The translations under genes were made by a program, and so were the position numbers. From NCBI GenBank assembly GCA_016748015.1, contig JAAOMT010000566.1, forward strand, positions 293,579 through 357,578: 64,000 nt of DNA, given 5' to 3'. Shown here one piece after another: positions 10,052-64,000 of the stretch. Positions within the stretch are counted from its first letter, which is position 1; each line of letters opens with the position of its first letter. A model generated the notes under the pieces. The model saw only the letters and a list, made by a program, of their open reading frames with translations, was not told the DNA's origin and searched no databases. This DNA is from Geosiphon pyriformis uo1. Its lineage: Eukaryota > Fungi > Glomeromycota.

Positions 10052-10846
10052 TGTTACAAGTAACTATTTCTGGTGTTGGATTAAGTAACAAATCCGTAAC
10101 TTGGTACTCAAATCTAGTTGTAGTTAATAGTAATCTGAAGGTTTGTGTCTGAAGGATTTGTATCCAAAGAGTTTGGTTGAGTTCTTTGTATAATAAACAG
10201 AGATTCAATGGTAATAGTTTTATCCATAGCTTCTCAAAACTGCAGTTTCATCAATTTCTTTCTCAGCTTAATGGCCGGTATTTCTCTTGATAAGCTATTC
10301 TCAATTAAGTGTTCTACTCTTATTTCTGGGTCTTTTACCAGTCACGTTTATCCTGATGTCAGTACCTCATGTGTTAATTCTCAATAGAATTAGTAAACAA
10401 CAATAAAATCAAAGCAAGAAATAAAAAAAATAAAAAAAAATAAAAAAAGAAAGAAATAAGCCAAGACAATTTGCAAGTTAGTATTCTGTTAATAGCCATG
10501 ATCAAGAGCTATTGTTCCAGTATAGTTAAGTATCAATTACTATCAACATGAAGTGTTGATAGTGGCAGCAGGTTTGAGATAACAAACAGTTATTTATTTG
10601 TGGTTTGGAAAGTTGTCTAGATGAAATTTAAATTGAGAGGTCTGTCTTTTTAGCTTCTAATCCTACTGCTATATATACATAATTGAGATTCCTCAATTCC
10701 TCAATTTTTTACAACAGGAATCCTGAGATTTCTGAAATTTTGCAATTTCTTTGAGAAAAATCCTGAAATTCTACATTTTACTATGTTTACTTCTGATTGG
10801 TTAATAACTATGCTAATATATATTCCCTATATTTCTATGAGTAATA
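10052..10846 (-). repeat. 3' LTR of element A (795 bp)
   Basis: Direct repeat of 19281-20151. PPT AAAAGGAGGGAA lies at 10850-10861 on the minus strand. Confidence 0.92.
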
Positions 10847-19280: not shown

Positions 19281-20151
19281 TGTTACAGGTAACTATTTCT
19301 GGTGTTGGATTAAGTAACAAACCCATAACTTGGTGCTCAAATCTAGTTGCAATTGATAGTGATCTGAAGGTTTGTGTCTGAAGAGTTTGTATCTGAAGGG
19401 TTTGGTTGAGTTCTTTGTATAATGGACAGAAATTTAATGGTAATAGTTTTATCTGTAGCTTCCCGAAACCACAGTTTCATCAATTTCTTTCTCAGCTTGA
19501 TGGCTGGTATTCCTCCTGGTAAGCTATTCTTAATCGAGTGTTCTACTCTTATTTCTGGGTCTTTTACCAGTTATGTTTATCTTGACATCAGTACCCCATG
19601 CATTAATCCTTAATAGAGTTAGTAAACAACAATAAAATCAAAGCAAAAAATAAAGAAAAAAAAAGAAAATAAAGAAAGAAAAGAAATAAGCCAAGGCAAT
19701 TTGCAAGTTAGTATTCTGTTAATAGCCATGATCAAGAGCTATTGTTCCAGTATAGTTAAGTATCAATTACTATCAACATGAAATGTTGATAGTGGCAGCA
19801 GATTTGAGATAATAAACAGTTATTTATTTGTGGTTTGGAAAGTTGTTTAGATGAAATCTAAACTGAGAGATCTGTCTTTTTAGCTTCTAATCCTACTGCT
19901 ATATATACATAATTGAGATTCCTCAATTCCTCAATTCTTCACAACAGAAATTCTGGGATTCCTGGAATCTTGCAATTCCTTTGAGAAGAATCCTGAAATT
20001 CTGGAATCCTGTGATTCCTTGTGAGAATCCTGTAATTCCTGGAATCCTGCAATTCCTGAGAGGAATCCTGGAATTCCACATTTTACTACGTTTACTTTTG
20101 ATTGGTTAATAACTATGCTAATATATATTCCCTATATTTTTATGAATAACA
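19281..20151 (-). repeat. 5' LTR of element A (871 bp)
   Basis: Repeat of 10052-10846 with extra GGAATCCTG-type tandem units at ~19945-20080. Confidence 0.92.
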
Positions 20152-20760: not shown

Positions 20761-23700
20761 ACTTTTTTTTCTCTCTTTTATCCCAAATTCCTGAAAAAGA
20801 GTCAAAAAGTTTTTTGAAAGAAGTTTTTTACAATTCAGTATAATAAATCTAAACTCTTTATTCTTGACTATAAGACCACTATTGACTGTAGTATTGCTGT
20901 CATAAAAATGGTTGCTAAAATTTCTAGTTCTAATGATAACTTCAGGCCTGTTCTTCCAAAAAAAAGAGAAGAGGTGGCATTTTAGAAGATGGTTCTGGTG
21001 GTAAAAAAATTGGCCTTAAAGTTTAGAGTAGTTACTCATGGAATTTAGAGACTGGTGACACTACAGAATCTAATAGTATTAATATAAAGGAGGAGTGTTT
21101 AGTAGAGAAGACCAGCTTCAATTATGGTGAAAGCAGTGTTTTTGCTGGTAATAATCCTAATCAAATGCTCATAAGCTCAAAAGTCAAAACTAAAAAGACA
21201 TTGGATAAACCATTAAGAAAATTTAATTTTTCATTATGTAGTGATAATAGTAATGTTTTTTTGAATGGTTCTGTGGTTTTTCCCCCTTTCTCCTTTGAAA
21301 AACTTGGTCAATATTCTTGTCAGAAAGTTTTTTACTCTGAATATTGGTCTAGATAAAGTGATTGGCAAAACATTTCAAGAAAAATATGCTGTTATTAAGA
21401 AGTTATTTTCTGAAATCAATGGTTTTAGGGGGGGTCTCTACCTTCTCAAAATTTGCTGAGATAATTAGAGCAATGTTTACCTCCAAATTGGGCTTAATAA
21501 AAACCACTGAAAAGGCTACTAGTGTAAAAATTGTGGTAAATACCAATCTCAAAAAATTTACTGGATGTTCAGATTGGGCTGTGGTGTTGAAAAAAATTCC
21601 AATTGGAATATTGGCTAAGGCTGTACATGCCACACTATCCAAGTTTGATATAATTAAGTCGATCAAAATACAATTGGTAAGACTGTGACAAAAAGCATTG
21701 GTTGAGTTTAAACATTCAAATTATGCTAATTTGGTCACAGCAAAATAGTTTATCCTAATTGAAAAAGATGCAGTGCATGTTGCTAGATCTAATATGAACA
21801 AAGAATCTTGGGATGTGAGAAATATATATAAGGCTCTTTTATATACTCTGTAAATAGAAACCAATGCACATAATATTTGGAACTATGTTACTTTAGTGAG
21901 TGAAAAAATCTGTGTTATTGACTGTCATCCAGTTTCTTATGCTCAGACCAGGTGTACTGCTGTTTGTTTTGACTTGGCTGAATCATTAAATGCTATTATG
22001 GGAACCACACCAGTTCTAAGGAGTGTTAATTTGCACTGGTCTTGTCTCATCTTGGCTAAGTGTTTAAAGTGTAAGAACTTTGGCCATATATCTTTAAACT
22101 ATATGGCTGGTGAGAAGAGTGTTTCTTCTGGTGCCTCAACTTATAGAATTTTTTCGAACACAGATAAAAGCAGACTGTTCATCATTTATGCCAAACATTT
22201 AGCACCAGTTGCTCATCCAATTTCTTTTAGTGGTATCTCTTGGGTGAAAATAGTTGATGAATCTTCTTTCTCTCTTTTTCTTGTTTATAGTAGTTCTGCT
22301 TATTCTAGTTCTTTTTTGGAGATGAAACCTCTCTCACCTGTGTTTTTAGATTTGAATGTTAGGTTTGCTGTTCTTGAGTGTAGTCTTGCCAGCCTTGCAA
22401 AATATATTGATCAGTTGGTTAAGAGGTTGAATACATCTGGGCCAATAGTTTCCCAGTCTAGCCCTGAATGTCAGCCATTGATAATTTCTTCATCACAGAA
22501 TCAAGGAGCAAATATAGTGATGAGTGAGAGTTTAGATGTGGCCACTAGGGGTGAGACTATTGCAAAAGTGATGGTTTTTGATCTCTCAGCTATCTCAAAA
22601 ATAGAAAAAACTTTAAACAATCTGTCAATCACAGTTATGAATCTTTTGGCTAAAATAAACAATGCTGATTTGGTTCCTATTATTTTTTTTTCTTAATGAC
22701 TAATTTGATCTGAAAAATTGCTACATGCAATGTTAGAGGCATAAACAATCCTGCAAAGCAAGACAATATTGTGCATTGGCATAAGGACATGAACAATCTG
22801 ATTTCGATTTTTATGGAAACTAAGCTGAAAGAGAAAATACATTCATAGATTGTTAACAAATTTGGTGGTGTCTGTGTATTTACTTCTGGTTTGAACTCTA
22901 GTTACTTGGGGTCAGGTGTTGTTGTGGTCATGAACAATTTTTTGGCAAGGCATGTGTGTAAGATTTCTGAAGTACTTGGTTGGCTTCTTTTTATCAAGTT
23001 GTTTTTTAAAAATAAGCTTTCTGTTTTGATTTTGGGGCTTTACACTAGAGCTTCTCTTATAATCCATCTTTTTCAGGCTGATGAAATCAATTCACTCATG
23101 GCTAGAGCTGTGAATGAATCTTTTTTTATTGTTTTTGGTGGCAATTTCAATAAAAATGATTCTCATAGATGTACCAGCTTTAAAAAATGTCTTGATCTGG
23201 AGTTAGTTAATTCTTTGGTTGAGAGTTTGGCAGTGTGAGCATTTACTTGAACAAATTCTCAAAGAGTTGTAAAAATAATTGATTATGTGTTTGTTTCTTC
23301 AAATTTGGTCAGTGCATTGGTATATTATAATATTCTGAATGTTAGTAAACATTTTAACACTAATCATCAGACTGTTTCTGTGTCTGTGAGTTTGAGTAGA
23401 TTATTAAACACACAGTTGAACTCTCTTCACAAACAGGCAAATATGAATTGTTGAAAGTTTGATATCAAGAGTGTTGATGAGGTTAAGTAGTGTGAATTCA
23501 AAGTGTCAACAGCAGCAAATGCTGTTATGTTTTCTGATGAATTTGTTTCCTCTATGGTGTTTTCTAATCTGGATTCTATGTGGAATATTGTTTATAAGAT
23601 AATGGTTTTTTTGGCTAATGAAATGTTTAAAAAGAAATAGTTTAAGAGCTTTAATAGTGTCTTCACCAAGAGTTCTTTTAGGTTTCACAAATTGGAAATT

Positions 23701-26700
23701 TTGATTTCAAGAATTGTTAAGACATCTTGTAAAAAAGACTTTGTTAGACTTATATCTTTGATGGATCATTGGGCTTCTTTGGACTCTGATAAAGCCTTGG
23801 CAGTACAGGTTCTTTTGGATTCTGGTGTAAGTTTTGATTGTGTTAAATCTGCTTTTTTTGGTGTATGAAAGTCTTATTATGCTTCTAAACTTGCTGAATT
23901 TTTGAGAGCTCAAGAGTTAAATATTAAGTCTGCTATTAATAGGTGTATAGAGAGTTTTGCTTTTGATAAAAGTCATACTATCAGAAGTGTTTTGAAATAT
24001 TCTTTCCATAAAATAGAATTGGACTATCTGGTTGTTGGTAATAAATTAATTCTGGAGCCTAGTTTGGTTAAGACTAAGGTGAATGTGATTATGGAAGAAT
24101 GGACTAGGAGATACAAGGTAGTTGCTGATATCTTTAGTGAATGGTCTCATTAATACCAGTCTTTGGAGTATGTTTTTGATAGTGCATTCTCAGATGTGAT
24201 GCATTCAATTGATTTTAATGAATTGTTTGGTGTGATTTCTGATCTGCCTAATGACAAAGCTGCTGGTCTTTTCAGTATTCCCAATGAACTCTGAAAGCAC
24301 TGTAACAAGTCCATTTTGGGTATGCTTTTGGAGCTTTTGAACACTTGTTTGTTTTATGAATCAGTGCTTAGTTTTTGGAGAAAGGCTTGGGTCTCAATAA
24401 TCACTAAACCATATGAATAAGAGAGCATTTTCACAAACACCTATTCTATTGCTTTGATTGAAATGACTCATAAAATTCTCTCCAAGATTCTGTCTGATAG
24501 GATTTCTCTAATATGTAGCACCTTTGATGTTCTTTGTGGTAACAACTTCTCTGTTCTAAAAGGAATGACTACACAATCACCCATTTTTGCAGTTGGTTTG
24601 GTAATAGAGGATGCTTTGGAGAAGAACTGTAAACTCTAACTGGTTTTACAGAACATGCAAAAGGTATATGATTCTGTTGATTAAGAGCATCTTAAGAATA
24701 GTTTAATTAGGATTAAAATGTGTAGCAAGTTCATATGTTTTTTTGGTAGTATTCATTGCAATTGTGTTAACAAAGTTATGACTGACTTTAACTTAACTGA
24801 TGGTTATTATATTCATGATAGTTTAAATTAAAGAAAGATCTTCTTACCACTTTTCTGGCACATATTCTATGATTCTCTCCTTTGTGAAGTCAAAAAACAG
24901 GAAAGTATGTATGAGTACAAGTTAAATTCTTATTTCATCTCAAAAAATAGTCATCTAAAATCTAGTGCTAAGTTGTTTTCTTTCTTTGTTACTGGAGCTT
25001 TTGTCAATGATACAATTTGGGTTAACAGTAGTCAGAATATTATCCAGCATATTTTCAATATTGCCAGTAAATTTTTCCAGGTCAATAACATTTTCATTAA
25101 TACAGACAAGACTGTTGTTATCCCTATTAATTATAGAGTTAGTAATTCTTTTTTGTTTATTAGTGGTTCACTTATTGCTATTACCAAAAAAAGGAAATCG
25201 TATCATTATCTAAGCATTTTTTTTACAACTAAAAGTCTTTCAAAGCCTAGCTTGGCCAAAGCACAGTCTAATGTTCAGTTTTTCTCTAATCTTGTACTAA
25301 GAAAAGCCATTTCAGATAAGCAATTTTTGTATCTTGTTTCAGTAGTTTTCCATCTTATTGTAAGCTATAAAACTCAGTTCAGCTTCATTTCTCTCAATAT
25401 ATACAACAAATAGGATGCTCTAATTTAAAAAAGTTTTAAGTTGAAATCTGGTCTTTCTCTTAACTTCTTGAGTGATATGATCTATTACTCTTCCTTTTAT
25501 GGTTTGAAATCTTTCAAACAGATGCAAACTGAAGGTAAAATAGTGTTGTTTGTGAATTTTGTGAACTCTGGTGAGATTTTGGGTCATGTGTTCTTTCATA
25601 AATTTTATAATTTGCAGGTTTTGTGTTAGCATCCCATTTACTCTTTGAGTTTCTCAATTCGTATTCACATTAATCTTTTAAATAACTTTTTAGCTGGTGT
25701 GATTCATATTTTTTCAAAATACAATCTGTTTTTAAGTGGCTCTTCAAGCAATCTTTTTTGTCATCAGGGTGGGATCCCTATGTCAATAGTTTTTGGTGAA
25801 TCTAAATTCTGTATGTGTTCTTTTTCTCTCTATCATTATGGCATTGTCCACATAAATTAGCTTTGTAATTATTATGGTGCTATTTTTAATTAAAAAACTT
25901 TTAAGTACTGGAAGAGATTGAATCCTCATGGTCTGGTTTTTGATTGGTTCAGTCTTTCTGTTGTCTTCCTCAATAGTGTGGCTTTTATTTCTATTTATTC
26001 TTCTTTTCTTAAGGGTATTAATAGTTCTTTAAGCATTTTTGAGTCTCAGAAGTTTAAATTGGTATGTGATTGGTTGTTTTGTGTTAGTGTTGGTAGTCTG
26101 TTTGTCTATACAGATGGTTTTCTAAAGGATTTGAGCACCATACATAAGAAGGCTGGTGCTGCTGTCTTTTTTAAAGACATTGGTTTGTGTTTAAATGTAA
26201 AGATTTCTGGTTTATTGTCCTCTACTTTGATAGAGCTACAGGCCATAGCTCTAGCATTTGAGTGTGTTCCTTCTTTTAGCTCAGTATGTTTATATTTTGA
26301 TAGTCAGACTGCTTTGGATGTGTGCAAGTCGGAACTATATTTAGTTTGTTCAGATTTTTACAATTGGTGCTGGATGAAATGTTAGCATGTTGTGGACATT
26401 ATTTGTCACAAAAATTTAAGAATAAAGTGGCTTAAAGTGAAAGATTACTCAGATGTTGTGGAGAATGATTGTGTGGATGCTTTTGCTGTTATTGCTTCCC
26501 TTTCTGATTGGTTCCTTCCACCCTGTTTGAAAAAACATTGCCTTTTGGCTAATGGTAATCTTGTTTCTGGTAATTCTAGGCATTTTATTTGTGATATTTT
26601 TAGATTTGTTCATCATGCACATTAGAAGGTTGGTTTTGGTTCTAAGGTTTTAGTGAGTGATTTATTATCAGACATTGATTGGCTGAGTTTTTTCTTGGTG

Positions 26701-27520
26701 TGGCATTCTGATTTACATATGGCTGCAGATTTTATAAGCAAATCTTCTGTCAGCTTGTATATATATTTTATGAAGGCCTTATATTATTGGCTACCTGTTG
26801 CTGTTTAGAAGTGTTTCTATTCCAGACATTACCCTAGTATATTGTGTTTGTTCTGTAATAATGTAAAGGTTTTGGATCATGTTTTTTCTTGTAAAATTGA
26901 TTTTTTTATCTATTGTCAATTGTTAAATACCCATGTAGTTTTCTGAGAGCTAATTTTTGGTTTTTTTCATTCTTTTTCTTGTGTGTTTTAGCTTTTGTCA
27001 TTTTGTGCTTGTAATATCTCTGTATTTACAGTCCTTTACAAAGATTTTGTTTTTAAAGATTGGTTTCAAGAGACTGTGTTCATTTTTCATAATCCCAAAA
27101 TTGCAAGTCAGAGAATTGTGGATTTTATGTATGCTTTTAGTCTTACTTTCAAGAATTGCATCTGGTTAGTTCATGCTAAATATCATGCCTTTATAGAAAA
27201 AAATTGGCTAATTCCACTTGATAGTTCAATTCTTATTTCAATTTTTGGGATGTTTTCAGAGTTGTTTGCTAGTATTATCAGGTTGCTTGGTATTGCTGAT
27301 GCTTTTGGTGTTTGCTTTGGTTTTTGTAAATCATATTCATTCTTTTCAGGTGTTGGCAAAGATGTTTCAGTTCACATAGTTGCTTAGTGTTGTTCTGGTT
27401 AGTCTGAGTGACTGGTTACATATAGAAAAAGCATGATTTGTGTCTAGTTTAAATCATTTATTTGATGTATTATATTAGATAGTATTTGAATCTCACTCAT
27501 AAAGCATTAATAAAAAAAAA
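20761..27520 (+). mobile_element. Full-length degenerate non-LTR retrotransposon (ORF1; ORF2 APE-RT-RNase H)
   Basis: Pyrimidine-rich 5' end matches 42178. ORF1 runs to 22696. ORF2 starts ~22696 and shows KIATCNVRG (APE), GGNFN, RT AFV(D)DT and RNase H VYTDG..ELQAIALA, ending at 27387. 3' UTR and poly(A) follow. Confidence 0.9.
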
Positions 27521-27562
27521 ATTATTAACAATAAAATCTAATTATTATGTATTATAATATAA

Positions 27563-27712
27563 TTTGATCTCATTTTTTGCTGCTGGTACTTTTGTTGATG
27601 ATATAATTTGGGTTGGTAATAGCCAAACTACTATACAACACATTCTTAATGTTGCAAATAAATTTTTTAGGTTTAATGACATTTCCATCAATAATGACAA
27701 AACTGTGGCCAT
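27563..27712 (+). mobile_element. 5'-truncated LINE, left part (RT region), interrupted by element B1
   Basis: Encodes FFAAGTFVDDIIWVGNS..INNDKTVAI and continues at 37591 after the TSD CCAT. Confidence 0.85.
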
Positions 27713-28698
27713 TATTACCAGACAAAATTAGAGATATTATTTAGCATGAAATTATCTTATAATTCCTATCATTAATTAGCATATATTATCGTTTCAAATG
27801 ATCACTTATTACATTAGCAAAAAAAAAAATGTCCGAAATTATCATTTAATTAATAACCCAAATTGTACACAACACAAATGTAACCTAATTGCAATGATCA
27901 ATTATGCAATATCCCAAACTATGTAACATTCAAAAGTTCACCGAAATTTGTAGAAATTCACCGAAATAATTGATAGTTTACCGAAAAATTTAATAGTTCG
28001 CCGAAATAATTTGTAGTTCGCCGAAATGTATCTTTAGTTCAGTAAAATTGTAGAAAATAGCAAAGTTCAAGTTCATAAAATAGTGTTACGACAAGTTGTA
28101 TAAAAGAAGAGCTTTTCTCTTCGAGAAAATGTATTTTACTTTAGATTTATCTCTTAAAACCGTTCCTATACACACAAAAAGAAATAAATATCAAATAATT
28201 CAAAAAAACCAAATTCTTTAATTATTGTACTTGGAAAATCTCCAAAACCCAACTAATGTTTTGAAATTGATTAGCTACCAATTTCAGTAAACTGTTAGTG
28301 ACTCCAGGCCTGGATAGAAAACGTTTCCCTTAACAGAATTCTATTTCTTTTATATTTCTTTTATTTTCTTTTCTTTTTTTATTACAATTATTAGGGTAGC
28401 CTACAGACAAGATTCCTGTAGAAGAGTCGACTTTCACAGCAAAGTAACTACACATTTTTAGTGAGCTTCCAGATGAGCAATTCCTGGGAAAGAGTTGACA
28501 TTTACTACAACATAACTACATAAAGCAACTGGCATGGAATTGGCCATTCCACTTATAAGCCCAGCAAGTTCAAATTATAGGAGATAATTTGAAGATAAAT
28601 TCAGTTACTGAAGGTTCAACTACTTCCTGGAAACGTGAATTCACAACAAATCAACATTAACAACATTTAAGAAAAGAGACCAAAAACCTCTGGTAACA
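27713..28698 (+). repeat. 5' LTR of B1
   Basis: Direct repeat of 36601-37586, ends GGTAACA. TATA-like TATAAAA at ~28099. Confidence 0.95.
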
Positions 28699-28743
28699 TT
28701 TGGTGCTCTTCCACGGAAATAACACAGCAACAACAAATTCAAA

Positions 28744-31700
28744 GTGACGACCACATCAGACACAGCAACTCTAGAGTATTACCAGTCAATTTACACCCAC
28801 TGCAAACAAAGATTCAACATTCCAGACGGAATTGAAGTTGTCAAGAAATCAGTATATCAATACATTGAAAACCACATCAACAATTATCTTTTTGGAAATT
28901 ACAATATCTCAAAAGTTAGAAGCAACCTTTACAATAATTTAGCACACTATTCACAGTTGGGAACTGAAGACCTTAACAGTAAAACACTTGCCATTTACTT
29001 TCACAAACTTAATTTTAACATTATCAAGTACTGTAAAGAAACATATCTAGTGCAGTCTTAATACACTATTGATTTTGAATTGAAAACAGAAACAAGCAAC
29101 AAAGGCAAAAACAAATTGAAACAATATTCACAAACCACCCCAAATACTCTAATACTACCAAAAACAACTGCCATACATTTACAAACACCTGAACAAGGAA
29201 CCAGTTCAAAATTTCCACTTACTATCACATCTTTTCCAGCTTTACTTGCACAAGCACAAACACCTAATTTACCCTTAAATCAATTTACAAGACCAGAAGA
29301 TTTTACATCACTCAGAAGTCCCATTAGACAATGAAAACCCCTTCAAACTAGTTCCAATCTTCTTGACTTTCTAGCTGAAGATCAAAGTGAAAACTCTGAG
29401 ACAGCAGCAAACGAAGAAAACGAACCTGAAATATCTGAAGAAGAATCAATAGACAGTGAAAACGAAGAAGACGAAATGATAACATACATCACAAAAATCC
29501 CTAAATTTAATGGAGAAGACATTAAGACCAGTCCTCAAGAATGGCTCAACCAAGTTACTAAAGCCAGAGATGCAAATGGGTGGAATGCCACCAGAATGTT
29601 AAGAACAATTCCCTACTTTCTCAAAAGAACAGCAGGAGAATGGTTTGAAAACCTGGCCATCTCATTCAATGATTGGAATGCTTTTAAAGCAGCCTTCCTT
29701 GAACAGTTCACTGACAATAATACTTCTATCACCCTTCGTAATCGTTTTCAAAATATCAAACAAGAACCCTCCGAATTTGTTATGATTTATATTGGGAAAT
29801 TCAACAAACTTCTCAGACAAATTCGCCAACTCAAAACAAATGATTATTATTCCAATGCTCAAATCCTGGATCAATTTATCACTGATCTAAAAGATAAACT
29901 AATTAAAAAGATTCATCCACATGCTCCAGAAGATTTGAACTCTGCCATCCAACATGCAAAAAGATACGAAATGGCTATGGAAGAAGCCAATCATACAAAA
30001 CTTGTAAATTTGGCAATTGGAGAAACCAGCTCAGCAGCTGAGGAAAAAATTGACCAACTCACAAAGAAGGTCGAAAACTATTTTACCAACCAACAACAAC
30101 AACAATCCCAAAGATATCAACCACTCCAAAGACGAAATCAAAATAACTTTGCACTACTTTCCAATAACCAGCCCCAGAATTGCCATTACTGTGGAATCTC
30201 TGGCCACTGGAAAAGAGATTGCAGAAAGCTACAATGAGACCAACAAAATAGGAGTAATCAATGTTACTCTCCACCACAGCAATCTTATTATCAACCATCA
30301 CCACCAGCTTACTATCCACCAAGACCCCAATACCAAAATAACTATTATCAGTCTGCTCCACAGCCAATCCAACAGCAATACCAATAACCACCCACACAAC
30401 ATTATCAAGTGCCTGTTCGAAGACTAATTACACAAAATCAATTCATACCACAAAACTGATACCAAGTAAATAACAGTAGAATTAGTTCGAACAACCAATT
30501 GGTTCTCCAAAATTCCACTCAACCAAGACCCAACCACTATTATACTCAACCCAGTTATTTAACAATGTCAGAAGAACAGGATTTTTACTATACTGCACCC
30601 TTGGAAGATAGAGCTGCAGCACAATAACAAAACCCTTCTCATAACCACACCACTATTTCACCAGCCTGAATTGCTGAAAACGCCAATCTCTCTGATATCT
30701 TTCCTTTCGAATTTGAAGCAAATGAATCATCATTCTTGCTTAGCAATGTAGCAGTTAATGAGCAAAAAGCCATCACTGTAATGTACACAGAAGCTGAAGT
30801 AGAAAGAAAGCCAATTTGTTTGATCCTAGACAGTGGATCCACTGGAAGCATTGTCACACATCAATTGATGCAGCAGCTAAAGAAAAACATTGACCGACCA
30901 GCTCAGACAATTATTGTCACTGCTGATAGCATAAAAAAGACTCCAGTAGGAGAAATTGACAATTTTCCATTCACTCTTAATGGAATCACTATTCCAACCG
31001 AAATTCTTGTAATGGATGCTCCCCAATATCAAGCCCTTGTCAGAAATGACTGGCTTCAAAAAGCCAATGCAAAATTAGACTGGGAAACCCAAGAACTACA
31101 AATCTCTTACCAAGGACAACATGCCCAAGTACCTACCACTTGTGGTATATTTAACAAACACTCTGAAAAAGCCCTGGCTTTTGAATTTGAACCAGAAGAA
31201 GAAAAACCAATAATCGAAACATTTATGGCTCTTGGATCAATGTCCAACTGGGCCGATGAAACAGAACAAGAACATTTTACACCACACTCTAAACCCGAAA
31301 CCTCTGGATGGAATATCCCTTACTCAAAATCCGAACCAAGGAAACAATGCCCCTATATTCCCCTTAAATATAAGGACTGCCACAAGAAACTATTGTCAAT
31401 AGGAGCCTGCATTTCAACTGAAGAAGAATATGAAAATCATACTTGTTATTACTGCAAGGCTTGCCACAGAGAACAATGGAGCCATCTAATAAAAAGGAGT
31501 GGAAAATGGGACAACACCCCTTGTTTGACTTGTGGAGATATGCTACCGGAAAAATGCAATTGGATTGATGTAACAATGAGAGGAGGAGTCTGCGATCAGA
31601 CCTGCCAATATGCTTTATCAATTTCAAAAAAAGTAAAAAGAGGAACACCCTTTAATGCAGCATATAACAGTGCTCTCAACAAACTTTATCACTACCTTCA

Positions 31701-35912: not shown

Positions 35913-36632
35913 ATGACTATTCCTCAAAACATTTAACAATTATCCCAAAAACTAATGTTAGCTTTAAAAACAATACCCGAATTATCCATTACTGTTACTG
36001 GAAACCACATTAATTATACCCAAACAGAAGTAATTACAAATTTAGCCCCAAATTCACGAAAATATCATCCGTATAAGAAGAACACAAGAAGTTATACTGG
36101 AATTCACCTGCCAGAACTTTTAAAGCTTGCTTTAAGAGAAAACCTAATGCTCATCCCAATTAGTATTCTACCAAATACTACAATTTAACAAAGACTTCAA
36201 TTGTGTCTCAATAAAGAAAACACTGAATATCCTCCAATCTATAGATATTTTCACATTGGAAAAACACTCTACGAATAGAAACTGGAACTTACAACAGCAA
36301 ATCTTACAAAAGAAGCTATCCAGAAACAACTCCACAACAAATTCAAGACAACAGCGGGATCAACAAACAGTTATTACAGGCTCAGAGCTGCTCTTAGACT
36401 TTATGATCTATTCTACACCTGTGAAAACATACTACAAAACCCAATTTTTCAACCTTTGAAGATTCAATACATTGGAAAGCTCACAGAACTAAAATTTCAA
36501 CAATTTTCAGACCAAATTTCTTCAATAATTTTGGATTATTATCTGAAAATGACAGACAGTACTTGGACTTTGATGGAGCTTAGTCTTGAGGAGGAAGTTA
36601 TATTACCAAATGAAATTAGAGATATTATTTAG
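35913..36632 (+). pseudogene. ORF3 of B1 (239-codon unknown protein overlapping the 3' LTR)
   Basis: Single frame from ATG 35913 to TAG 36632. Its three internal stops are sense codons in copy B2. Confidence 0.85.
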
Positions 36633-37586
36633 CATGAAATTATCTTATAATTCCTATCATTAATTAGCATATATTATTGTTTCAAATGATCACTTATTAC
36701 ATTAGCAAAAAAAAAAATGTCTGAAATTATCATTTAATTAATAACCCAAATTGTACACAACACAAATGTAACCTAATTGCAATGATTAATTATGCAATAC
36801 CCCGAACTATGTAACATTCAAAAGTTTGCTGAAATTTGTAGAAATTTGCCAAAATAATTAATAGTTCACCAAAAAATTTAATAGTTCGCCAAAATAATTT
36901 GTAGTTCACCAAAATGTATCTTTAGTTCAGCGAAATTGTAGAAAATAGCAAAGTTCAAGTTCATAAAATAGTGTTATGACAAGTTGTATAAAAGAAGAGC
37001 TTCTTTCTTCGAGAAAATGTATCTTACTTTAGATTTATCTCTTAAAACCGTTCCTATATACACAAAAAGAAATAAATATCAAATAATTTGAAAAAACCAA
37101 ATTCTTTAATTATTGTACTTAGAAAATCCCCAAAACCCAACTAACGTTTTGAAATTGATTAGCTACCAATTTCAGTAAACTGTTAGTAACTTTAGGCCTA
37201 AATAGAAAACGTTTCCCTTGACAGAATTCTATTTCTTTTACATTTCTTTTATTTTCTTTTCTTTTTTTATTACAATTATTAGGGTAGCCTACAGACGAGA
37301 TTCCTGTAGAAGAGTTGACTTTCACAGCAAAGTAACTACACATTTTTAGTGAGCTTCCAGATGAGCAATTCCTGGGAAAGAGTTGATGTTTACTACAACA
37401 TAATTACATAAAGCAACTGGCACAGAATTGGCCATTCCACTCATAAGCCCAGCAAGTTCAAATTATAGGAGATAATTTGAAGATAAATTCAGTTACTGGA
37501 GGTCCAACTACTTCTTGGAAACATGAATTCACAACAAATCAACATTAACAACATTTAAGAAAAGAGACCAAAAACCTATGGTAACA
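36601..37586 (+). repeat. 3' LTR of B1
   Basis: Direct repeat of 27713-28698. Confidence 0.95.
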
Positions 37587-39980
37587 CCATCCCTATTAAC
37601 TGTCAAGTCAAGAACTCTTATCTAACTATTAGTAGTCTGCATATTTTTGTTGCCAAAAAAGAAAAATTACACTGCTATTTGGATATTTTTTTATCTTTTG
37701 AGAGTTTGTTAAAACTTAGCTTGACTAAGGTGCATTCGGATGTTCAAATTTTTGTCAACCTAGTTTTAAGGAAAGCAATCTCTAATAAATAGTTTGTGTA
37801 TTTGGTGTTTGCAGTTTTTTATCTGATTATTAGTTACAAAACCCAATGTAGTTTTATTTCTATCAGCATATATAATAAATGGGATGCTCTCATTTATAGA
37901 AGTTTGAAGTTTAAGTCTGGTCTGCTGCTTGATTTTTCCAATAATGTAATTCATCATTCTTCTCTGTATAGTTTGAAAATGTTTAAACAGATTTAAGTTA
38001 AAAGCAAATCGGCTTCAGCTGTTTCTTTTGCAAATTCAGTTAGTATCTTAAACAAGTTATTTTCTTACAGGTTACATAATCTTCAGATTTTTAGCTAGCA
38101 TCCTCTTTACTTTCTACAGTTTCCAGTTCATGTCAAAGTCAATTTTTCAAATAACTTTTTGGCAGGTATAGTGTGCATATTTTCTGAATATGATTTGTCT
38201 TTGGACAACTCTTTGGCCAGTGCTTTTTGTCTTTAAAAAAATACTCTTATGTCTTTTGTCCTTGATAAGTCAGTTTATCTTAAGTGTGTCTCTTCTTTTC
38301 AACATTATAAAATTGCTTTTATAAACCAGCTGCATGATCAGAATGGTGCTGTTTTTAATTGAATAATCTTCAAACAGTGGAAGTGGTTAGACTTCTGTGG
38401 CTCTGTTCCTATTTGGTTCAAGCTTTCTGTTTGATTTCTTGGTAATATTGTTCTTCTTTCTGTTAGTCTTTCATATTTGGGTGGTTATAATTCTTTGGAT
38501 ATATTTCAATCTTATAAGTTTGGTATTGTTAGAAACAATTTGTTGTGTGCTGATGCTGGCCACTTTTTTGCCTATACAGATGGATCTTTGAATGGTCTGG
38601 GAACTCTCAGTATAAAGACTAGTGCAGCTGTTTTTTTGAGAACATTAATTTGGATTTAAGTATGCAGGTTTCTGGTTTGTTGTCTTCCACCATAGTAGAA
38701 CTACAGGTTATTGCTTTGGCTCTTGAGTGTGTTCCCTTTTTTTGTTCTGTGGATCTGTTTATGGACAGCCAGGCTGCTTTAAATGCATGCAAGTCGAATT
38801 TGAAATTAGTTGATCCAGATTTCAGGAATCAGTATTGGATCAAATGTTACCACATTGTAAATGTTATTCATTGTAAAAATTTAGATGTCAGTTGGCATAA
38901 GATTAGGAGTTATGCTGGTGTTTCAGACAATGAACATGCTAATATGTTTGCCAAAGTGGCTGTTGTCTTCAATTGGCATCTACCTCATTTGGTCAGTAAA
39001 TATTACCTTAAGGCTGATAGTATTGCTGTTTTTGGTAATTCTAGACATTTTGTTTAAGGGGTTTTTCAGTCTATTTATCATACATATTGGAAAACTGGTT
39101 TTGGTTCTTAAGTGGTGACAGACAGTATGTTTGTCAATATTGATTAGTTCAGATTATTTTTGGTGTGGCATCTTGACTTCTACTTAGTGGCTGGTTTTAC
39201 TAGTAAACAGACTACTGGTTCCTAAACATATTTTATAAAAGCTCTTTATTATTGGCTTCCTGTTGTTGTACATAAGTGACTATATGATAGATGGTATTTC
39301 AATGTGGTTTATTTGTTCTATAGTGATGTTGAGGTCTCAGACCATGCCTTTTCTTGCCTGTTTAATACTGCTGGTCATGCTTAGTTGTTAAACATTTATG
39401 TGTCTGCTTGGGGTGTATGCTCTAATTTATTTTGTTCTTTTTCTTGTGTTTTGCAGTTGTCATCCACTTGTGTTTCTAATATTGTAGTTAATATGGCTTT
39501 GTTTAAAGGTTTTGTTTTTAATAATTGGTATTGTGAATCTGTTTTAGTTTTCAAAGATTCTAAGATTGCAAGTTAGTGTATTGTGGATTTTGTGCATAAG
39601 TTTTGCCTTGTATTCTGAAAAGATATCTGGTTGGTTTGTGTCAAGCACCAGGCTTTTATGGAAAAGAATAGTTTGATTTCATGTAATGGTTTTATTTCTG
39701 CTCAATTTTGGATTTTTCTTTGTTGTTTTTGGCTGGCATAGTTAAATTGTTGGGCATTGTTGAAACAGTAGGTGTGAGTTTTGGGTTTTGTAAACCTTGT
39801 TTGTTTTTTTCAAGTATAAAGGACACAGTTTCTGTTTATATAGATGTTTAATATTGTTCTGATTAGCCTAAATAACTAGTTACATGTAGGAATTGCATGA
39901 TTCACACCTAGTTTAGATCATTTGTATGATGTATTGTACTAAGCAGTATTTGAATTTTACTTATTAAACATTAAAAAAAA
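37587..39980 (+). mobile_element. 5'-truncated LINE, right part (RT end, RNase H, C-terminus, 3' UTR, poly(A))
   Basis: Continues 27563-27712. Shows AYTDGSL..ELQVIALALE (RNase H), the shared 3' UTR at ~39850-39970 and an A tail. Confidence 0.88.
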
Positions 39981-40619
39981 ATATATAATAATAAATATTT
40001 TAAAATAAACATAATTTATATAATAATTATATATTATTAATTATTTAAATCAGTCAAAATTATATTATGTTTTTATAATTACAAAATTATTTTTATATAT
40101 ATTTTAAAAAACAAATGTCTTTTTTTAAGATTAAAAACAATTAATAAATTATTTTAAATATCTAATAATTAAACAATACTTTTAAATAAAAAGCTAATAA
40201 ATTTATTTATAATATTAAATAAATATTATTATTAATTAACAAATTATGTTTTTTTTTAATTTAATCTAAATTTAATATATAATAATCACATATGTTTTTA
40301 ATAAATAATAATCAAATTTTAAACAAAAATTAACAATAATAATACATATATGTTTAATATTATTAAAAATTTTTAAAGTTTTCTTATATTAATTTTTAAA
40401 AATAATATTTTTATATAGAATTATATAAAGTTTATTATTAATAAAACAATATAAAAATTGTAAAAATTATAAAAAAATTAACAAAAACATTAAATAATAT
40501 TTTTTAATAATTAAAATAATTAAATATAATAGTATGTTTAATATATAAATACTATTACAAAAAAACACATAATTAAAATTTTTTATTTTATTATATTAAA
40601 TATATTTAATACTTAAATA

Positions 40620-40985
40620 TAAAGAGACATTAAAGTGAATTGTGGTTGTTTAAAGTAAAGTACAAGGTAAATATAAAGAAGATTGGTCTGATTAATAATA
40701 TAAAAAAAATCTCTGGTTTTTCTTATAGTAAATTTGGTCATTTGTCAGTAAAAATTACTTATTTGTTAGATATTAATAAAATGTTTGCTATAAGTTTTGG
40801 TTTGCATAAGGCCTGTTTTTTTTTTTGGTATTTGTAATAGTATAAGAGTATGTGTAAATACATAGTATTACTTTGATTAACTTGTATATATAGTAAGTAT
40901 ATGAGTCATATTTGGTCAGATTTACTTAATTTGTCTCTGTATTTTAAATAGTAGTTGGGCTGTATTTGTTAAATTGAATAATAAA
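40620..40985 (+). mobile_element. Highly eroded LINE 3'-end remnant
   Basis: IWLFKV..FAISFGLHKACFFF resembles the ORF2 C-terminus. It is followed by a degenerate 3' UTR (..ttgggctgtatttgttaaa). Confidence 0.6.
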
Positions 40986-42177
40986 ATTATATATAAAAAA
41001 TTATAAAACTGTTTACAAATAATAACTATTAATTTTTTATTAACTATATTTATAATATATTTAATCAATATATATAAATTAAAATATTATATTATAAATA
41101 TTAATTTTTAGTTAATGTTTTTAATAATTAATATATTAACAAATCTGGTTTTTAAAACAATTTTCTAAAAAACATAATTAATAAATTTATAATTAAAAAT
41201 AATATAAAATAAAAAAAATAAAAACTTTGTAGTTTTATTAGTTATAATATTAATAATTTTATTATAAAAACATTAAAATGTCTTTTTATCTTAATAGAAT
41301 TAACAAATAATTTCTTTTTTTTAATTATTAAAACAATATAATAATATTTTAATTAGTATTTATAATAAAAATAAACTTAAATTATCTAATTTAGACTTAT
41401 ATATCTTAATAATAATCTAATTATTTATATATATATTAATATAATAAGATATAAAAATTATTTTTAATATAAAAATAATAATCTAAAATTTAATTAACTT
41501 ATTAGTAAAAATATTATAATTTAATACAAAAACAATTATTAAAATAGAAAATAATATAAAAAATTCATTAAATAATCTAATATTTGTAAAAAAAATAAAT
41601 GTTTTAATATCTTATAAAATATAAAAGATAAAATCAGAAGTTTAAAAACTTAATATAAGACAAAAACTAAAAACTTAGTTTTTTTTATTTTTTAGAAATT
41701 ATTTATTTTAAAATACTAATAGATTTATTTAATAATTATTAAGTTTTAATGATTATAATAAACAGATTAATAATTTTTAAATAATAAATTTTATTTAATA
41801 TAAAAAATACAAAAATATTTAACATAAATTAAAAAAATTTAAAACTCAAAATTAACAAAAAATATTAGTGTTTAAAAGATTATAAATAATGTTTATTAAA
41901 AAACTAAAAATATTTAATTTTTTAATAAAAAATATTATATTTTATAAAAATATAGATTAATTAATAATTTAAAAACTAATTATAATTAATTTAAATAGTA
42001 TTATTTACAAAAACATTGGCAAAAAAATACAATAAAAAATAATATTATATTTAATTTTATTAATGTTATAATTAATTTATTTTAGCTTTATATAAGAAAA
42101 GTTATAAAAAATACATTACAGCAAAAAAAACTTTATTTTAATTTAAATTATAAATTTTATAACTACCAAAATATGTA

Positions 42178-45100
42178 AACTTCTTTCTCTTCTTCATTCA
42201 AAATTCTCGAAAAAGAGTCTATAGTTTTTTCGAAAGAAGTTTTTTACCATTCAATACAATAAATCAAAACTGTTTTTTGATTACAAGACCACTGTTGGTT
42301 CTGTTATTGCTGTTATGAAGAAGACCATTAAAGCTTCTGGTTCTGAGGGTGGTTTCAAGACTGTTGTATCAAGGAGGAAGAAGAAGAAGGGTGGTGTGTT
42401 GGAAAAGAGTATTGATAATAAAAAGATTACTGCCAAAGTTCTTGGCACTCGTTCATGGGGTTCTAAGACTGGTAACACTACAGAATCTGAAAGTATAGAC
42501 ATAGAGGAAAAATGCTTGGTTGAAAAAACCAGTGTAGACTATGATGATAATAGTACTTTTGCAGGAAGAAATCCTGATCAAACACCAAAGAGTTTGTATG
42601 TGAAGACCAAAAAAGTATTAGGGAAGCCACTGGGTGTGATTGATTATGATACTGTCAATGCAGAAGATGATGTGTTGGATGATTCTCTTCTTTTCCCACC
42701 TCCTCTTCCAGCCAAACTGTCCATTCAAGTACCTGTTCACAAATCTTTCACTTTAGATATTGATCTGGTAGTGGTGGCTGGAAAATCCTCTTATAAGAAA
42801 GTCAATTTTGTCAGAAGAATCTTTTTAGGAGTAAATGGTTTTGGGGGGGCCTCTACTCCCTCAAAATTTGGTGGAATCATCCAGGCATCTTTCACTTCTG
42901 AAAAGGCGATGATGGCAGTTGTACAATTGGCAAATAATCATGGTGTTGTGATAAACACCAATCTTAAGCGCCCCATCAACAATCGTATGAATCGGGCAAT
43001 TGTGTTAAAAGAAATTCCTGTGGGAACTTCTATTGAGACAGTGTATGCAGCCATTTCTGAATTTGGGGTTATTAAGTCGATCAAGATGCAGTTGGTGGGT
43101 CTATGGCAAAAGGCGATCATCAAATTAGAAGATCAAATTCAGGCTGATCTCTTGGCAGCTGAGTGGTCCATCCTTATTGGGAAAGATACAGTGCGTGTGG
43201 CCCAGGCCAATGTTGACAAACAAATGTGGGATGCCAGAGATGAGTTTAGGGCTTTACTTTATATTCTTTCCATGGACACCAATGCTTATGATCTTTGGGA
43301 CTTCATTGGTTTAGTTGGTTGGAAAACATGTGTTATTGAGTGCAGTTCTGTCAGTTATGTCCGAGCATGCTGTGCTACTGTGTGCTTTAATTCTGAGAGT
43401 AGTCTTATTCAGGCAATGGCAAACATTCCTGTTATAAAAAGTGTTGGTCTCCAATAGTCTCATTTAACCATTGCACTGTGCTCAATTTGCAAAACTTTCA
43501 GTCATACTTCTCTCGCTTGTTGTACTGCTGGTGTGTCTTCAAGTCCTAGGAGCAAGAAAGCTTCTTTCTCAGTTCAGGATTAGTTCCATTTGGCAAAGAT
43601 ATATGAAAAAAAGTCTGCCCCTGTTTCTTGTCTTTTGGCTTTCAGTGGAAAAACTTGGGCTTCCATGGTTGGTAAACCACTCCCAATAGTGTCTTTTGGT
43701 GGTTCAGCTCAATCTGGTTCCATATCTTATGGTAAATCTCTCCCGACTGTTAATGGTAAATCGGAAAATTGTTTGAAGAATATTGAAAGCAGTCTTGTCA
43801 GTCTTGCGAGACAAATTAATGAGTTGGCTAAGAGGTTGGACTCATTCATGTCAGCAGTTTTCCAGCCTAGCCCTGGATGTCAGCTGTCGGTGACCCCCCC
43901 ATCACAGAATCAAGAGGAGGATATAGTAATGGGAGTGAGTTTGGGTGATGCCACTAGTGACAAGACTGCTGCCATTTTTGGTTCAACTGCCTCACCTGAG
44001 GTTGTGAAATTGGAAAACATGTTGGAAGGTCTCTCTGCTTTGGTCATAAGCCTATCAGCGCGCTTGGATGGTTTGGCTTTGGCAGGTGGTGCTCTTCCTT
44101 TCCCTCTTTCTTAATAAATGGTCTAATATAGAAAATTGCTACATGTAATGTTCATGGGTTGAACAATCTTGTGAAGCAAGATGATGTTATTCATAGGCAT
44201 AAGGATATGGACAATTTGGTTTCTATTTTTATGAAGTCAAAGCTTAAAGGGAAAGTTTGCCCATGGTTGGCTGACAAATTTAATGGTGTTCGGGTTTTTA
44301 CTTCTGGTCTGAATTTTGGTTCTTCAGATGCTGAGGTGTTAATCATCGTGAATTCTTTTTTAGCAAAGCATGTTTACAAGATTTCTAAGGTGCCTGGTCG
44401 GCTCTTATCTATTAAGTTGCTTTTCAAAAATAAACTTTTGGTGTCTATTTTGGGGCTCTATGCTGGTGCCTCATCAGTGGCTTGATTTTCTTAGGCTGGT
44501 GAGATCAACTTTCTCATTGCTAAAGCCATTAATGAGTCTTCTTTTGTTATTCTTGGTGGTGATTTTAATGAGGATGATTCATACAAATATGCCAGCTTCA
44601 AAAAATATTTTAATTTGGGTTTGATTAACTCTCTGGAGGGGAGTTCTTTTGTAAAGTTACCTACTTGATAAAATTTTTGTGGTATCACTAAAACAATCAA
44701 CTATGTGTTTGTTTCTTCTAATTTGGTTGGTACAGTCATGGATCATGGTGTGGATGGTATTGTAAAATATTTTGATACCAATCACAAGGCCATTTATGTT
44801 TTTGTGGAACTGGGTGGCCTGTTCAATGTCTAGCTGAATTCACTGTGCAAACAAGCTAATAGAGATTGTTAGAAATATAATATCAAAAATGCCAGTGAGA
44901 TTAAGTAATTGGAATTCAGGAATGCTACAGCTGCTAATACTGTTATGTTTTCAGATGAGTTTGTTGCGGCTAAGCAGTTTTCTGATCTGGATGCAATGTG
45001 GAATATTGTTTGTAAGATTATAGTTCTTTCGGCTGGTAAAATGTTCAAGAAAAAATGGTTTAAGAGTTTTGATTGTGTTTTTAATAAGATATCTTCTTGG

Positions 45101-51832: not shown

Positions 51833-52870
51833 TTTTCAAAGGTAATAATAAAATAAGAATTTCGCAAATTCTAAGTGATTTTCCCATGTTTTTTCTTGGT
51901 CTGTCACTTTCTTGCATGATTGTTGTTGGTACTGGTTCTCTGTTGGATTATACTTCACAGAGAGCACCAAATGTTACAGATGATTATTTGGGATCTTAAG
52001 TTAAATAACAAACCCATAACTTGGTGCTCAAAGGGCTGTACGCATTTGATATAATGTTGTTAGTAATATCTAAAGGTTTTGTAGTTTGAAAATTTTGTTA
52101 GAGTTCTTTGTATAATAGACAAAGATTCAATGGTTGTTCTATCCGTAGCTTCCCAGAATCACAATTCTGTCAATTTTTTTCTTGACATAGTGGCCGGCAA
52201 TCCTCTAATAAGTAATCCGTAATTTGCTTTATGTGTTCTACCCACTCACAGAGGTCTTTTACCAGGCAATCCTTGATGTCAGTAATCTAGCGCTTTTAAT
52301 CAATTAGTACACAACAATAAAATCAAAGAAAGAAATAAAGCAAAAATAGAAAAATAAAGAAAATAAAAAAATAAAAAAATAAGCCAAGACAATGTGCAGA
52401 TTAGTATTCGTTAATAGCCATAATTAAGAGCTATTGTTCTAGTGTGATTAAGTATTGATTGCTATCAACATGGAGTGTTGATAGTGAAAAGTAGATTTGG
52501 ATGGTAAATAATTTATTTATTTAATATTTTTGTGAAGGGAAGATTTCTAACTAAAAGATTCTTTTTTTTTTTGTATTTTTAATAATTATGATTTACAAGT
52601 CTAATTGATTTTATGAGTCTAATTGACTCCACAAATCAATTGATTTTGAGTCTTCTTGACTAATTTTATAACTTCTAATACTACTGCTATATATACATAA
52701 TTTGAGTTTTATGAGATTGCTCACATTTTCGAACAATATTCTATAATTTTTCAAGCAATGCTCACATTGCTGAGCAATGTGCCATGATTTCTGACATTGC
52801 TCCACATTGCTGAGCAATGTGCTTACATGCTAACTACTGCTCCCTTATTGGTCTACTGTTTTCCTATATT

Positions 52871-54217: not shown

Positions 54218-55171
54218 TATTACTGAAGGTTTTTGGTCTTTTTTTTTTAATGTTGTTAATGTCTGTTTGCTGTGAATTCACGTTTTTTGGATGTAGTTGA
54301 ACCTCCAGCAACTGAATTTATCTTCAAATTATCTCCTATAATTTGAACTGCTGGACTTATAAGTGGAATGGCCAATTCCATACCAGTTACTTTATGTAGT
54401 TACGTTGTAGTAAACGTCAACTCTTTCCCAGAAATTGCTCATCTGGAAGCTCACTAAAAATGTGTAGTTACTTTGCTGTGAAAGTCAACTCTTCTACAGG
54501 AATCTTGTCTGTAGGCTACCCTAATGATTATAATAAGAAAAATAAAAAAAAATAAAAAAAATGTAAAAGAAATAGGATTTTATCAAAGGAAGCATTTTCT
54601 ATTCAGGCCTGAAGTCACTAACAGATTATTGAAATTGGTAGCTAATCAATTTCAAAACTTTAGTTGGGTTTTGAGGATTTTCCAAGTGCAATAATTAAGG
54701 AATTTGGTTTTTTTGAATTATTTAATATTTATTTCTTTTTGTGTGTGTAGGAATGGTTCTAAGTGATAAATCTAAAGTAAGATACATTTTTTCGAAGAGA
54801 GAAGCTCTTCTTTTATACAACTTGTCATAACACTATTCTATGAACTTGAACTTTGCTATTTTCTACAATTTCGCTGAACTAAAGATACATTTTGGCAAAC
54901 TACAAGTTATTTCTGTGAACTATTAGATATTTCAGTGAACTATCAATTATTTCTACAAATTTCTACAAATTTCAGCAAACTTTTAAATGTTACATAGTTC
55001 GGAGTATTGCATGATTAATCATTGCAATTAGGTTACATTTGTGTTGTGTATAATTTGGGTTATTAATTAAATGATAATTTCAGACATTTTTTTTTTTGCT
55101 AATGTAATAAGTGATCATTTGAAACAATAATATATGCTAATTAATGATAGGAATTATAAGATAATTTCATG

Positions 55172-63091: not shown

Positions 63092-64000
63092 TTTGAAGTT
63101 GTTTTTGCTGTGTTGTTTCTGTGGAAGAGCACCAAATGTTACTGGAGGTTTTTGGTCTCTTTTCTTTAATGTTGTTAATGTCTGTTTGCTGTGAATTCAC
63201 ATTTTCTAGATGTGGTTGAACCTCCAGCAACTGAATTTATCTTCAAATTATCTCCTATAATTTGAACTGCTGGGCTTATAAGTGGAATGACCAATTCTGT
63301 GCCAGTTACTTTATGTAGTTATGTTGTAGTAAATGTCAACTCTTTCCCAAGAATTACTTGTCTGGAAGCTCACTAAAAATGTGTAGTTACTTTGCTGTGA
63401 AAGTCAACTCTTCTACAGGAATCCCGTCTATAGGCTACCCTAATGATTATAATAAGAAAAATAAAAGAAAATAAAAGAAATGTAAAAGAAATAAGATTTT
63501 ATCAAGGGAAGCATTTTCTATCCAGGCCTGGAATCACTAACAGATTATTGAAATTGGTAGCTAATCAATTTCAAAACTTTAGTTGGGTTTTAAGGATTTT
63601 CCAAGTGCAATAATTAAGGAATTTGGTTTTTTTAAATTATTTAATATTTATTTTTTTTTGTGTGTGTAGGAATGGTTCTAAGTGATAAATCTAAAGTAAG
63701 ATACATTTTCTCGAAGAGAGAAGCTCTTCTTTTATACAACTTGTCATAACACTATTCTATGAACTTGAACTTTGCTATTTTCTACAATTTTGCTGAACTA
63801 AAAATACATTTCGGCAAACTACAAGTTATTTCTGCAAACTATTAGATATTTCGGTGAACTATCAATTATTTTGGCAAATTTCTATAAATTTCGGCAAACT
63901 TTTAAATGTTACATAGTTTGGGGTATTGCATAATTGATCATTGCAATTAGGTTACATTTGTGTTGTGTACAATTTGGGTTATTAATTAAATGATAATTTC

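Follow-up and report, generated by a model that had tools for sequence, protein, structure and literature searches.

A conserved GTG codon ahead of the gag capsid region in Ty3/gypsy elements of Geosiphon pyriformis suggests a non-AUG start and two Gag isoforms

The 64,000-nucleotide stretch of Geosiphon pyriformis uo1 DNA that was analysed here, referred to throughout as the window (contig JAAOMT010000566.1, positions 293,579 to 357,578 of the forward strand), is fungal (Glomeromycotina) DNA crowded with decayed copies of several related families of Ty3/gypsy long terminal repeat (LTR) retrotransposons. Our subject is the beginning of gag in these elements. In all five of them the LTR ends in ...TAACA and is followed by TT, by a primer-binding site beginning TGGTG..., by a spacer and by the motif AAA-GTG-(G/A)C, whose GTG codon we propose as a first start codon of gag, the second being an AUG at the head of the capsid domain.

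The elements and their GTG codon

The window is AT-rich (about 33% GC), with blocks of strand asymmetry. Two of its elements belong to family B (B1 and B2, 88.5% identical in self-comparison), families A and C are represented by one element each, and the fifth, D, is a truncated A-like fragment (Table 1; element coordinates and LTR identities come from a self-BLAST of the window). They are placed in Ty3/gypsy (Metaviridae) by LTR pairs that are 91-95% identical and adjoined by a primer-binding site, by a Ty3-type capsid with a CCHC knuckle and by the order of the pol domains. Pfam searches of translated pieces, whereby frames with stops were searched piece by piece, return along B1 the succession PF03732 Retrotrans_gag, RVP_2 protease, RT_RNaseH_2 and Integrase_H2C2; PF19259 is detected on genomic copies, and the CCHC knuckle is readable in translation. 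B1 itself is a dead copy, since what lies between its GTG and the capsid holds an in-frame TAA (Table 1) and an in-frame TGA at 29332-29334, with further stops downstream. The 358-codon frame of B2, for its part, matches hundreds of G. pyriformis 'hypothetical proteins' at no more than 88% identity and matches no other organism; the loci retrieved by way of these proteins all lie in assembly GCA_016748015.1.

The earlier note had claimed that all five elements open gag with AAA-GTG-(G/A)C, that the first in-frame ATG of family B follows only 244 codons later, where the capsid begins, and that families A and C likewise carry a Met at that point. Each of these statements was reproduced: the motif stands at all five positions, every time after a primer-binding site, B1 and B2 have no in-frame ATG before codon 245 (29476 and 62359, respectively), and the capsid Met of A and C is found at 18228 and 48915, respectively. 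The distance from the primer-binding site to the GTG is 43-81 nt and differs between families in length and sequence (TGGTG lies 43 nt before the GTG in B). The A at -3 is invariant, a G occupies +4 in all elements but B1 and D, and positions -2 and -1 vary (AAA, AAC, ACA). As the A and the G are kept while the spacer differs, the context is conserved beyond its surroundings, and we regard it as a good one for a near-cognate start, although the nine flanking gene models, themselves uncertain, do not allow a host preference to be derived.

The frame is closed directly upstream. An in-frame stop precedes the GTG by 24-111 nt in 14 of 14 DNA copies, the shortest distance being that of B1 and the others running from -27 to -111, and between this stop and the GTG none of the 14 copies contains an ATG, nor do they contain any other near-cognate codon common to the families. 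Unspliced RNA therefore allows entry into the frame only at or just before the GTG. The possibility of an upstream AUG, which the earlier note had set down as something to be excluded, is thereby answered as far as an LTR-encoded in-frame ATG is concerned, there being none between the nearest stop and the GTG; its other half, an AUG brought in by a spliced exon, depends on the weighing of alternatives given further below.

Of the annotated genomic copies, which number more than 200 and come from five sub-lineages, about 85% keep this GTG. In family B, the 126 protein models that reach it read V in 107 cases, M in 12, L in 4 and I in 2 (V 95, M 11, L 3 and I 2 among 111 aligned protein copies); the three sub-lineages of family A read V 88, M 19 and L 4, and C-like representatives have V almost throughout. 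DNA copies that were not chosen by way of a gene model, that is, the five of the window and three found incidentally within fetched loci, carry GTG in 8 of 8 cases, and for two of the exceptions among the protein models, P0157 ('M') and P0201 ('L'), the DNA reads GTG. Gene prediction favours ATG-bearing copies, so that M is if anything over-counted. Because GTG makes up only 10% of the Val codons of these elements and synonymous sites are saturated, this retention is unlike that of an ordinary Val codon, and the lineages that share it have proteins only about 20% identical. On a tree of 106 family B copies, 11 changes are needed to account for the 11 M copies; these copies are scattered and thus represent independent G-to-A hits, and their frequency of about 10% falls inside the 1-13% range of G-to-A change at other Val codons. 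The retention of GTG across copies and families, which had been named as a check on the claim, is accordingly borne out.

An extension depleted of ATG

Between the GTG and the capsid ATG lie 244 codons in B, 293 in C and 331 in A. The DNA of the three families is no longer alignable over this interval; their proteins, by contrast, can be aligned over about 105 residues, beginning at the first codon, with 14-26% identity. For this N-terminal domain of B2, AlphaFold predicts four helices (residues 7-23, 31-50, 56-69 and 79-100) with a predicted local distance difference test (pLDDT) score of 86 and a predicted template modelling (pTM) score of 0.79, while residues 105-244 are disordered in the model and end in an acidic run. 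The 244 open codons of B2, the alignment of the proteins across families and the confident four-helix model together argue that the extension is coding. Two AlphaFold models compared by Foldseek with the PDB and BFVD retrieved no structural relative of the domain (best E-value 0.34), and no Pfam domain falls on the extension. A profile of the domain run against 1.84 billion cluster representatives gave 203 matches, the ten weakest of which were checked and comprise nine from Geosiphon and one spurious low-complexity insect sequence. These searches and models point to a new, lineage-specific Gag domain with four helices, so far seen only in Geosiphon. The extension contains no hydrophobic segment (the maximum hydropathy over 19 residues stays below 1.0), so neither a signal peptide nor a membrane anchor is indicated and the domain is modelled as soluble and helical; residue 2 is Ala or Thr and not Gly, for which reason myristoylation is not expected.

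The same interval is short of ATG in every frame. Over 732 nt, B1 and B2 contain one ATG apiece. Shuffles that preserve dinucleotides would lead one to expect 7.7, and 0 of 2000 gave so low a count; when codons are shuffled the expectation is 5.5 (P=0.013). The counts are 7, with 17.2 expected, in family A (P=0.0015) and 4, with 10.7 expected, in family C (P=0.002). No other trinucleotide of the 64 is as depleted as ATG in any of the four copies (A, B1, B2 and C); its z lies between -2.9 and -3.4, and TAA comes behind it. The effect is local: in 366-nt windows that fall between U5, the last part of the LTR, and the capsid ATG, the observed-to-expected ratio is 0-0.3 in B and 0.4-0.5 in A, and in the remainder of the elements it is about 1. 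In six B copies read as DNA, ATGs common to at least four copies are absent from about -610 to +731, after which eight occur within 122 nt; the putative B leader, taken from about -610 to the GTG, is thus without a common ATG, and in U3 such ATGs are present again. Some 100 B protein copies tell the same story, with Met in at most three of them at any residue from 2 to 244, a majority Met at the start of the capsid and a Met frequency of 1.4-1.9% downstream of it. The depletion that the earlier note had asked to be compared with shuffles is, then, significant, local and specific to ATG.

The single ATGs of B1 and B2 were said to occupy different sites, and so they do: that of B1 at 29331, out of frame, is ACA in B2, and that of B2 at 62424-62422(-) is ACG in B1. 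More generally, 11 of the 12 ATG-bearing columns of the zone read ACG or ACA in other copies (ancestral states being judged solely by counting, column by column, over natural copies), so that the stray ATGs are attributable to CpG decay in its two directions. Such decay of CpG to TpG or CpA suggests cytosine methylation of the elements, now or in the past. ATGs that recur within the zone are without exception followed at once by a stop, and they stand at -111 in B and at +569 in C (Table 1); one-codon open reading frames (ORFs) hold ribosomes only briefly. No AUG common to copies thus precedes the next start in B, and the residual ATGs of A and C are mostly ACG/ACA sites or such AUG-stops. The notion of an AUG-free leader consequently stands for family B, and in A and C it has to be restated as depletion, with the common AUG-stop at +569 in C. 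Taken together, these comparisons make it probable that selection keeps the 0.7-1 kb between the GTG and the capsid ATG free of AUG in all frames. As an observation on the window itself, copy-specific ATG sites that show ACG or ACA in sister copies are 28535, 29331, 62424 and 63202.

The capsid start has features of its own. Its first residues read Met-Ala-Tyr-Ala-Pro... in A and Met-Thr-Thr-Pro-Tyr... in C, and its ATG stands in the contexts AAA-ATG-A (B2, C), GAA-ATG-A (B1) and CCA-ATG-G (A). Retrotrans_gag begins 45 codons after it, and the best sequence-structure match of the capsid is the Drosophila Arc (dArc) capsid, a weak one, from residue 10; a product started at this ATG would therefore be a canonical Ty3-type Gag. 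Only Geosiphon sequences appear among the best 120 matches listed in the capsid search. Since nearly all long ORF pieces of B1 are in the frame of the GTG and some genomic models fuse gag with protease, gag and pol most likely form one frame.

Table 1. Coordinates of the features discussed, in the window and, where a locus handle is given, in other genomic copies
Feature	Position	Strand	Basis and remarks
B1 5' LTR	27713..28698	+	Self-BLAST; 986 nt, end ...GGTAACA
B1 3' LTR	36601-37586	+	Self-BLAST; 94.7% identical to 5' LTR
B2 LTRs	54220-55203 and 63137 to window end	-	Self-BLAST
Family A LTRs	10052-10772 and 19281-20002	-	Self-BLAST; 90.9% identical
Element D, truncated A-like fragment	GTG 51905..51907	-	Sequence and self-BLAST
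Possible TATA box, TATAAG	28554..28559	+	Read from sequence; 190 nt 5' of B1 GTG
B1 primer-binding site, TGGTGCTCTTCCAC	28701..28714	+	Two bases past LTR end
In-frame TAA	28720..28722	+	24 nt 5' of B1 GTG; also in L006
AAA-GTG-(G/A)C sites	19221(-), 28744(+), 48036(+), 51907(-), 63091(-)		Read from sequence
B1 proposed GUG start, AAA-GTG-AC	28741..28748, codon 28744-28746	+	A at -3
B1 four-helix domain (modelled), 105 codons	28744..29058	+	Alignment of A, B and C; then in-frame TAA 29059-29061
B1 linker (predicted disordered), acidic end	29062..29475	+	pLDDT below 50, residues 105-244
B1 capsid ATG	29476..29478	+	First ATG common to copies; proposed second start
B1 capsid and CCHC nucleocapsid ORF piece	29476..30237	+	GTG frame
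B2 open frame, 358 codons	62015..63091; GTG 63091-63089, extension 62360-63091, capsid ATG 62359-62357	-	
Family A extension, 331 codons	18229..19221; GTG 19221-19219, capsid ATG 18228-18226	-	Four stops
Family C extension, 293 codons	48036..48914; GTG 48036-48038, capsid ATG 48915-48917	+	One stop
ATG-TGA one-codon ORF	63197-63202, ATG 63200..63202	-	111 nt 5' of B2 GTG; ACG in B1; ATG in 3/6 B copies, ACG in the rest
ATG-TAA one-codon ORF	48605-48610	+	+569 of family C; in 3/3 C copies
AAC sub-lineage of A	L003 10001; L004 10001		Proteins P0350, P0304, P0267, P0232, P0295, P0279
dUTPase-bearing loci	L001 13054-14628; L002 13196-14329; L006 13042-14418; L009 13076-17729, 18429-19445		

Two starts on one RNA and the alternatives

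We favour, with a probability of roughly 60%, the reading that a GUG-started long Gag(-Pol) and a short Gag(-Pol) started at the capsid AUG are made from one RNA by leaky scanning. The near-cognate GTG is in frame with the capsid ATG at a distance of 244 codons in B, and no stop intervenes in B2 or in many genomic copies. Under this scheme 40S subunits scanning the unspliced genomic RNA would first meet the GUG in its good context; a minority would initiate there and yield the long Gag(-Pol), with 244-331 extra residues made up of the four-helix domain and the disordered acidic linker, and the majority would bypass it, scan the 0.7-1 kb AUG-free stretch and initiate at the capsid AUG, yielding canonical Gag(-Pol). 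The need for the second start would keep the extension free of AUG, the need for the long form would keep it open and its domain conserved, and a change from GTG to ATG would cut the supply of the short form, in keeping with the M copies of family B being scattered dead ends. Decoding of the GUG as a start codon, use of the capsid AUG alongside it and the ratio in which the two products arise are points that we infer from sequence comparison, and it is likewise on comparative grounds that the two isoforms proposed in the earlier note find support: the ATG-free zone stops exactly at a Met that three families have in common, and dense conserved ATGs follow. The wider proposition is that a fungal Ty3/gypsy clade has fixed GUG as the first start of gag and polices about 1 kb against AUG in order to make two isoforms from one unspliced RNA, the long one having a lineage-specific four-helix domain at the position of the retroviral matrix (MA) protein; we would hold this to be about an even bet.

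Several observations weigh against the two-start reading. Every copy examined is decayed, so that the activity of the families has to be judged from copy number and LTR identity. The M copies of family A are weakly clustered, needing 15 changes for 19 copies, a value reached or undercut in 8 of 200 label shuffles; the clustering centres on a sub-lineage of A that has AAC before the codon (Table 1) and often carries ATG, mixed with GTG copies. An ATG start may be tolerated there, and the mixture would reflect either a start-codon switch underway or dead copies multiplied by segmental duplication. Families A and C, with 3-4 DNA copies examined in each, are depleted of ATG and not free of it. Finally, no initiation-boosting hairpin was found 3' of the GTG, where folding z-scores run from -1.9 to +1.4 without a structure in common.

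Among the alternatives, the one that survives best supposes a single product, be it the GUG-started long Gag alone, its capsid Met being an ordinary residue, or the capsid-started Gag alone, with an extension that is rarely translated. The capsid Met could indeed be kept for structural reasons, and the GUG might be very weak, as near-cognate starts can be in certain fungi; nevertheless, ATG avoidance in three frames 5' of the Met would be purposeless unless ribosomes had to get there, and a foldable domain conserved over some 80% sequence divergence would be purposeless unless it were translated. We consider a single product unlikely.

Rather unlikely, too, is the view that the true start is an AUG in an upstream exon, with AAAG|TG serving as a splice acceptor or as the first codons of a second exon. 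It has in its favour, and this is a further point against the two-start reading, that many GenBank models join ATGs of the LTR (e.g., 28535) or other exons to the frame and that GT-AG pairs are available for doing so; one such model even creates A|TG exactly at the GTG site. These upstream 'exons' and their junctions nonetheless vary from copy to copy, some of the introns measure about 24 nt, and the LTR ATGs that are used correspond to ACG or ACA sites in other copies, that is, to products of decay. The pyrimidine tract expected before an acceptor is absent in B and C, and a gag mRNA spliced in this way would lack the primer-binding site. As for AAAG|TG as an acceptor, it was rejected because the AAC-GTG/AAC-ATG sub-lineage of A keeps the codon without an AG before the TG.

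Very improbable, by comparison, is the idea that the extension is non-coding in active elements and forms a long 5' leader, of which the frame and the GTG would be by-products of an RNA constraint or of A-rich composition. In its favour are a sense strand rich in A and poor in G and the frequency of long leaders among retroelements; against it speak 244 codons without a stop at 33% GC, families that align as protein and not as DNA, a confidently modelled fold, and the lack of any Rfam match or of any structure standing out. Hardly credible, lastly, is the decay of an ancestral ATG to GTG in the copies seen, for although some 10-18% of copies carry ATG and all of them are old (LTR pairs 91-95% identical), it was rejected on the large GTG majority in every family (8 of 8 among DNA copies not chosen via a gene model), on the scatter of M copies over the B tree and on a mutation bias that runs the opposite way, G-to-A and C-to-T and not A-to-G, the preference of gene prediction for ATG acting, if at all, in favour of M.

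Known systems and further observations

The strategy of two starts by way of a near-cognate codon is known, and the GUG-started form in a fungal Ty3/gypsy clade would be a new variant of it. In murine leukaemia virus (MLV), glyco-Gag (gPr80gag) is started at a CUG that lies upstream and in frame, and gains 88 residues with a signal-anchor (PMC3042739). There, as proposed here, a near-cognate codon on unspliced genomic RNA extends the N-terminus of Gag beside an AUG-started Gag; the Geosiphon elements differ in having GUG, an extension of 244-331 residues without a hydrophobic segment, a fungal host, no env, and gag and pol in one frame. Rice tungro bacilliform virus (RTBV) and the badnaviruses, reverse-transcribing kin of Ty3/gypsy, have an AUU start that is taken by about 10% of ribosomes and followed by some 900 nt of AUG-free ORFs, a short internal upstream ORF being tolerated (PMC5902531). 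The likeness lies in a weak non-AUG start and AUG-free coding sequence up to the next start, and the difference in that RTBV has separate downstream ORFs which ribosomes reach by shunting, whereas the second start in Geosiphon is in frame and would give N-terminal isoforms. In the host gene PEG10, whose capsid is of Ty3/gypsy origin, a CUG 34 codons upstream and an AUG are both used, as established by mutagenesis (PMC2800197); its extension is short, and no long AUG-free zone or additional folded domain has been described in it. For active LTR retrotransposons, a search of the literature brought up no account of gag starting at a codon other than AUG.

The succession of helical N-terminal domain, disordered linker, capsid and CCHC nucleocapsid in the Geosiphon elements recalls the MA-linker-capsid-nucleocapsid plan of retroviral Gag. 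The four-helix domain differs from MA in having no Gly2 and no Foldseek match to a matrix protein in PDB or BFVD (none below E=0.3), and with no structural match in either database an assignment as MA-like, or to any other known fold, is not possible. Conceivable roles are targeting and the control of assembly or of copy number.

Should the two-start reading hold, the logic of glyco-Gag and RTBV, in which a weak start other than AUG precedes sequence devoid of AUG, would reach LTR retrotransposons and the Glomeromycotina, and a single gag-pol frame would still be able to fix the ratio of two structural isoforms at initiation. Under the wider, clade-level proposition it would be the first described case of obligate non-AUG initiation in an LTR retrotransposon and would offer a natural system for near-cognate start use in early-diverging fungi.

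Annotation is affected as well. The GenBank models of the G9A89_* series (P0001-P0120 and P0262-P0363) are gag fragments whose N-termini stem from LTR ATGs, for instance from one 18 nt 5' of TATAAG, and from introns that are small or inconsistent and bypass stops; such N-termini are likely artefacts of gene prediction confronted with a missing ATG. Because predictors demand an ATG, the N-termini of hundreds of GenBank 'hypothetical proteins' from G. pyriformis would be invented, and the annotation of transposable elements in such genomes would need models that are aware of non-AUG starts.

The primer-binding sites of A (19164-19150(-)) and B (28701-28714) begin TGGTGCTCT and that of C (47955-47971) is TGGTGAACCC; given this difference, C probably uses a primer tRNA other than that of A and B despite the common design of gag. 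A tRNA scan found no tRNA gene in the window, and an Rfam scan found no Rfam family in it. A second retroelement is present in two copies that are 71-77% identical (21896-27712 together with 37588-38104, against 42315-47089), with a sub-threshold RVT_1 (reverse transcriptase) match at 46121-47089; one of these copies seems to have received the insertion of B1, since both flanks of B1 match the continuous copy at 46391-47053. Two blocks between elements, 8001-10000 and 40001-42000, have an extremely low GC content (10-14%). A dUTPase is unusual in LTR retrotransposons, some retroviruses excepted, and the pol regions of other Geosiphon Ty3/gypsy copies (Table 1) contain a domain assigned to dUTPase (PF00692, often alongside DCD).

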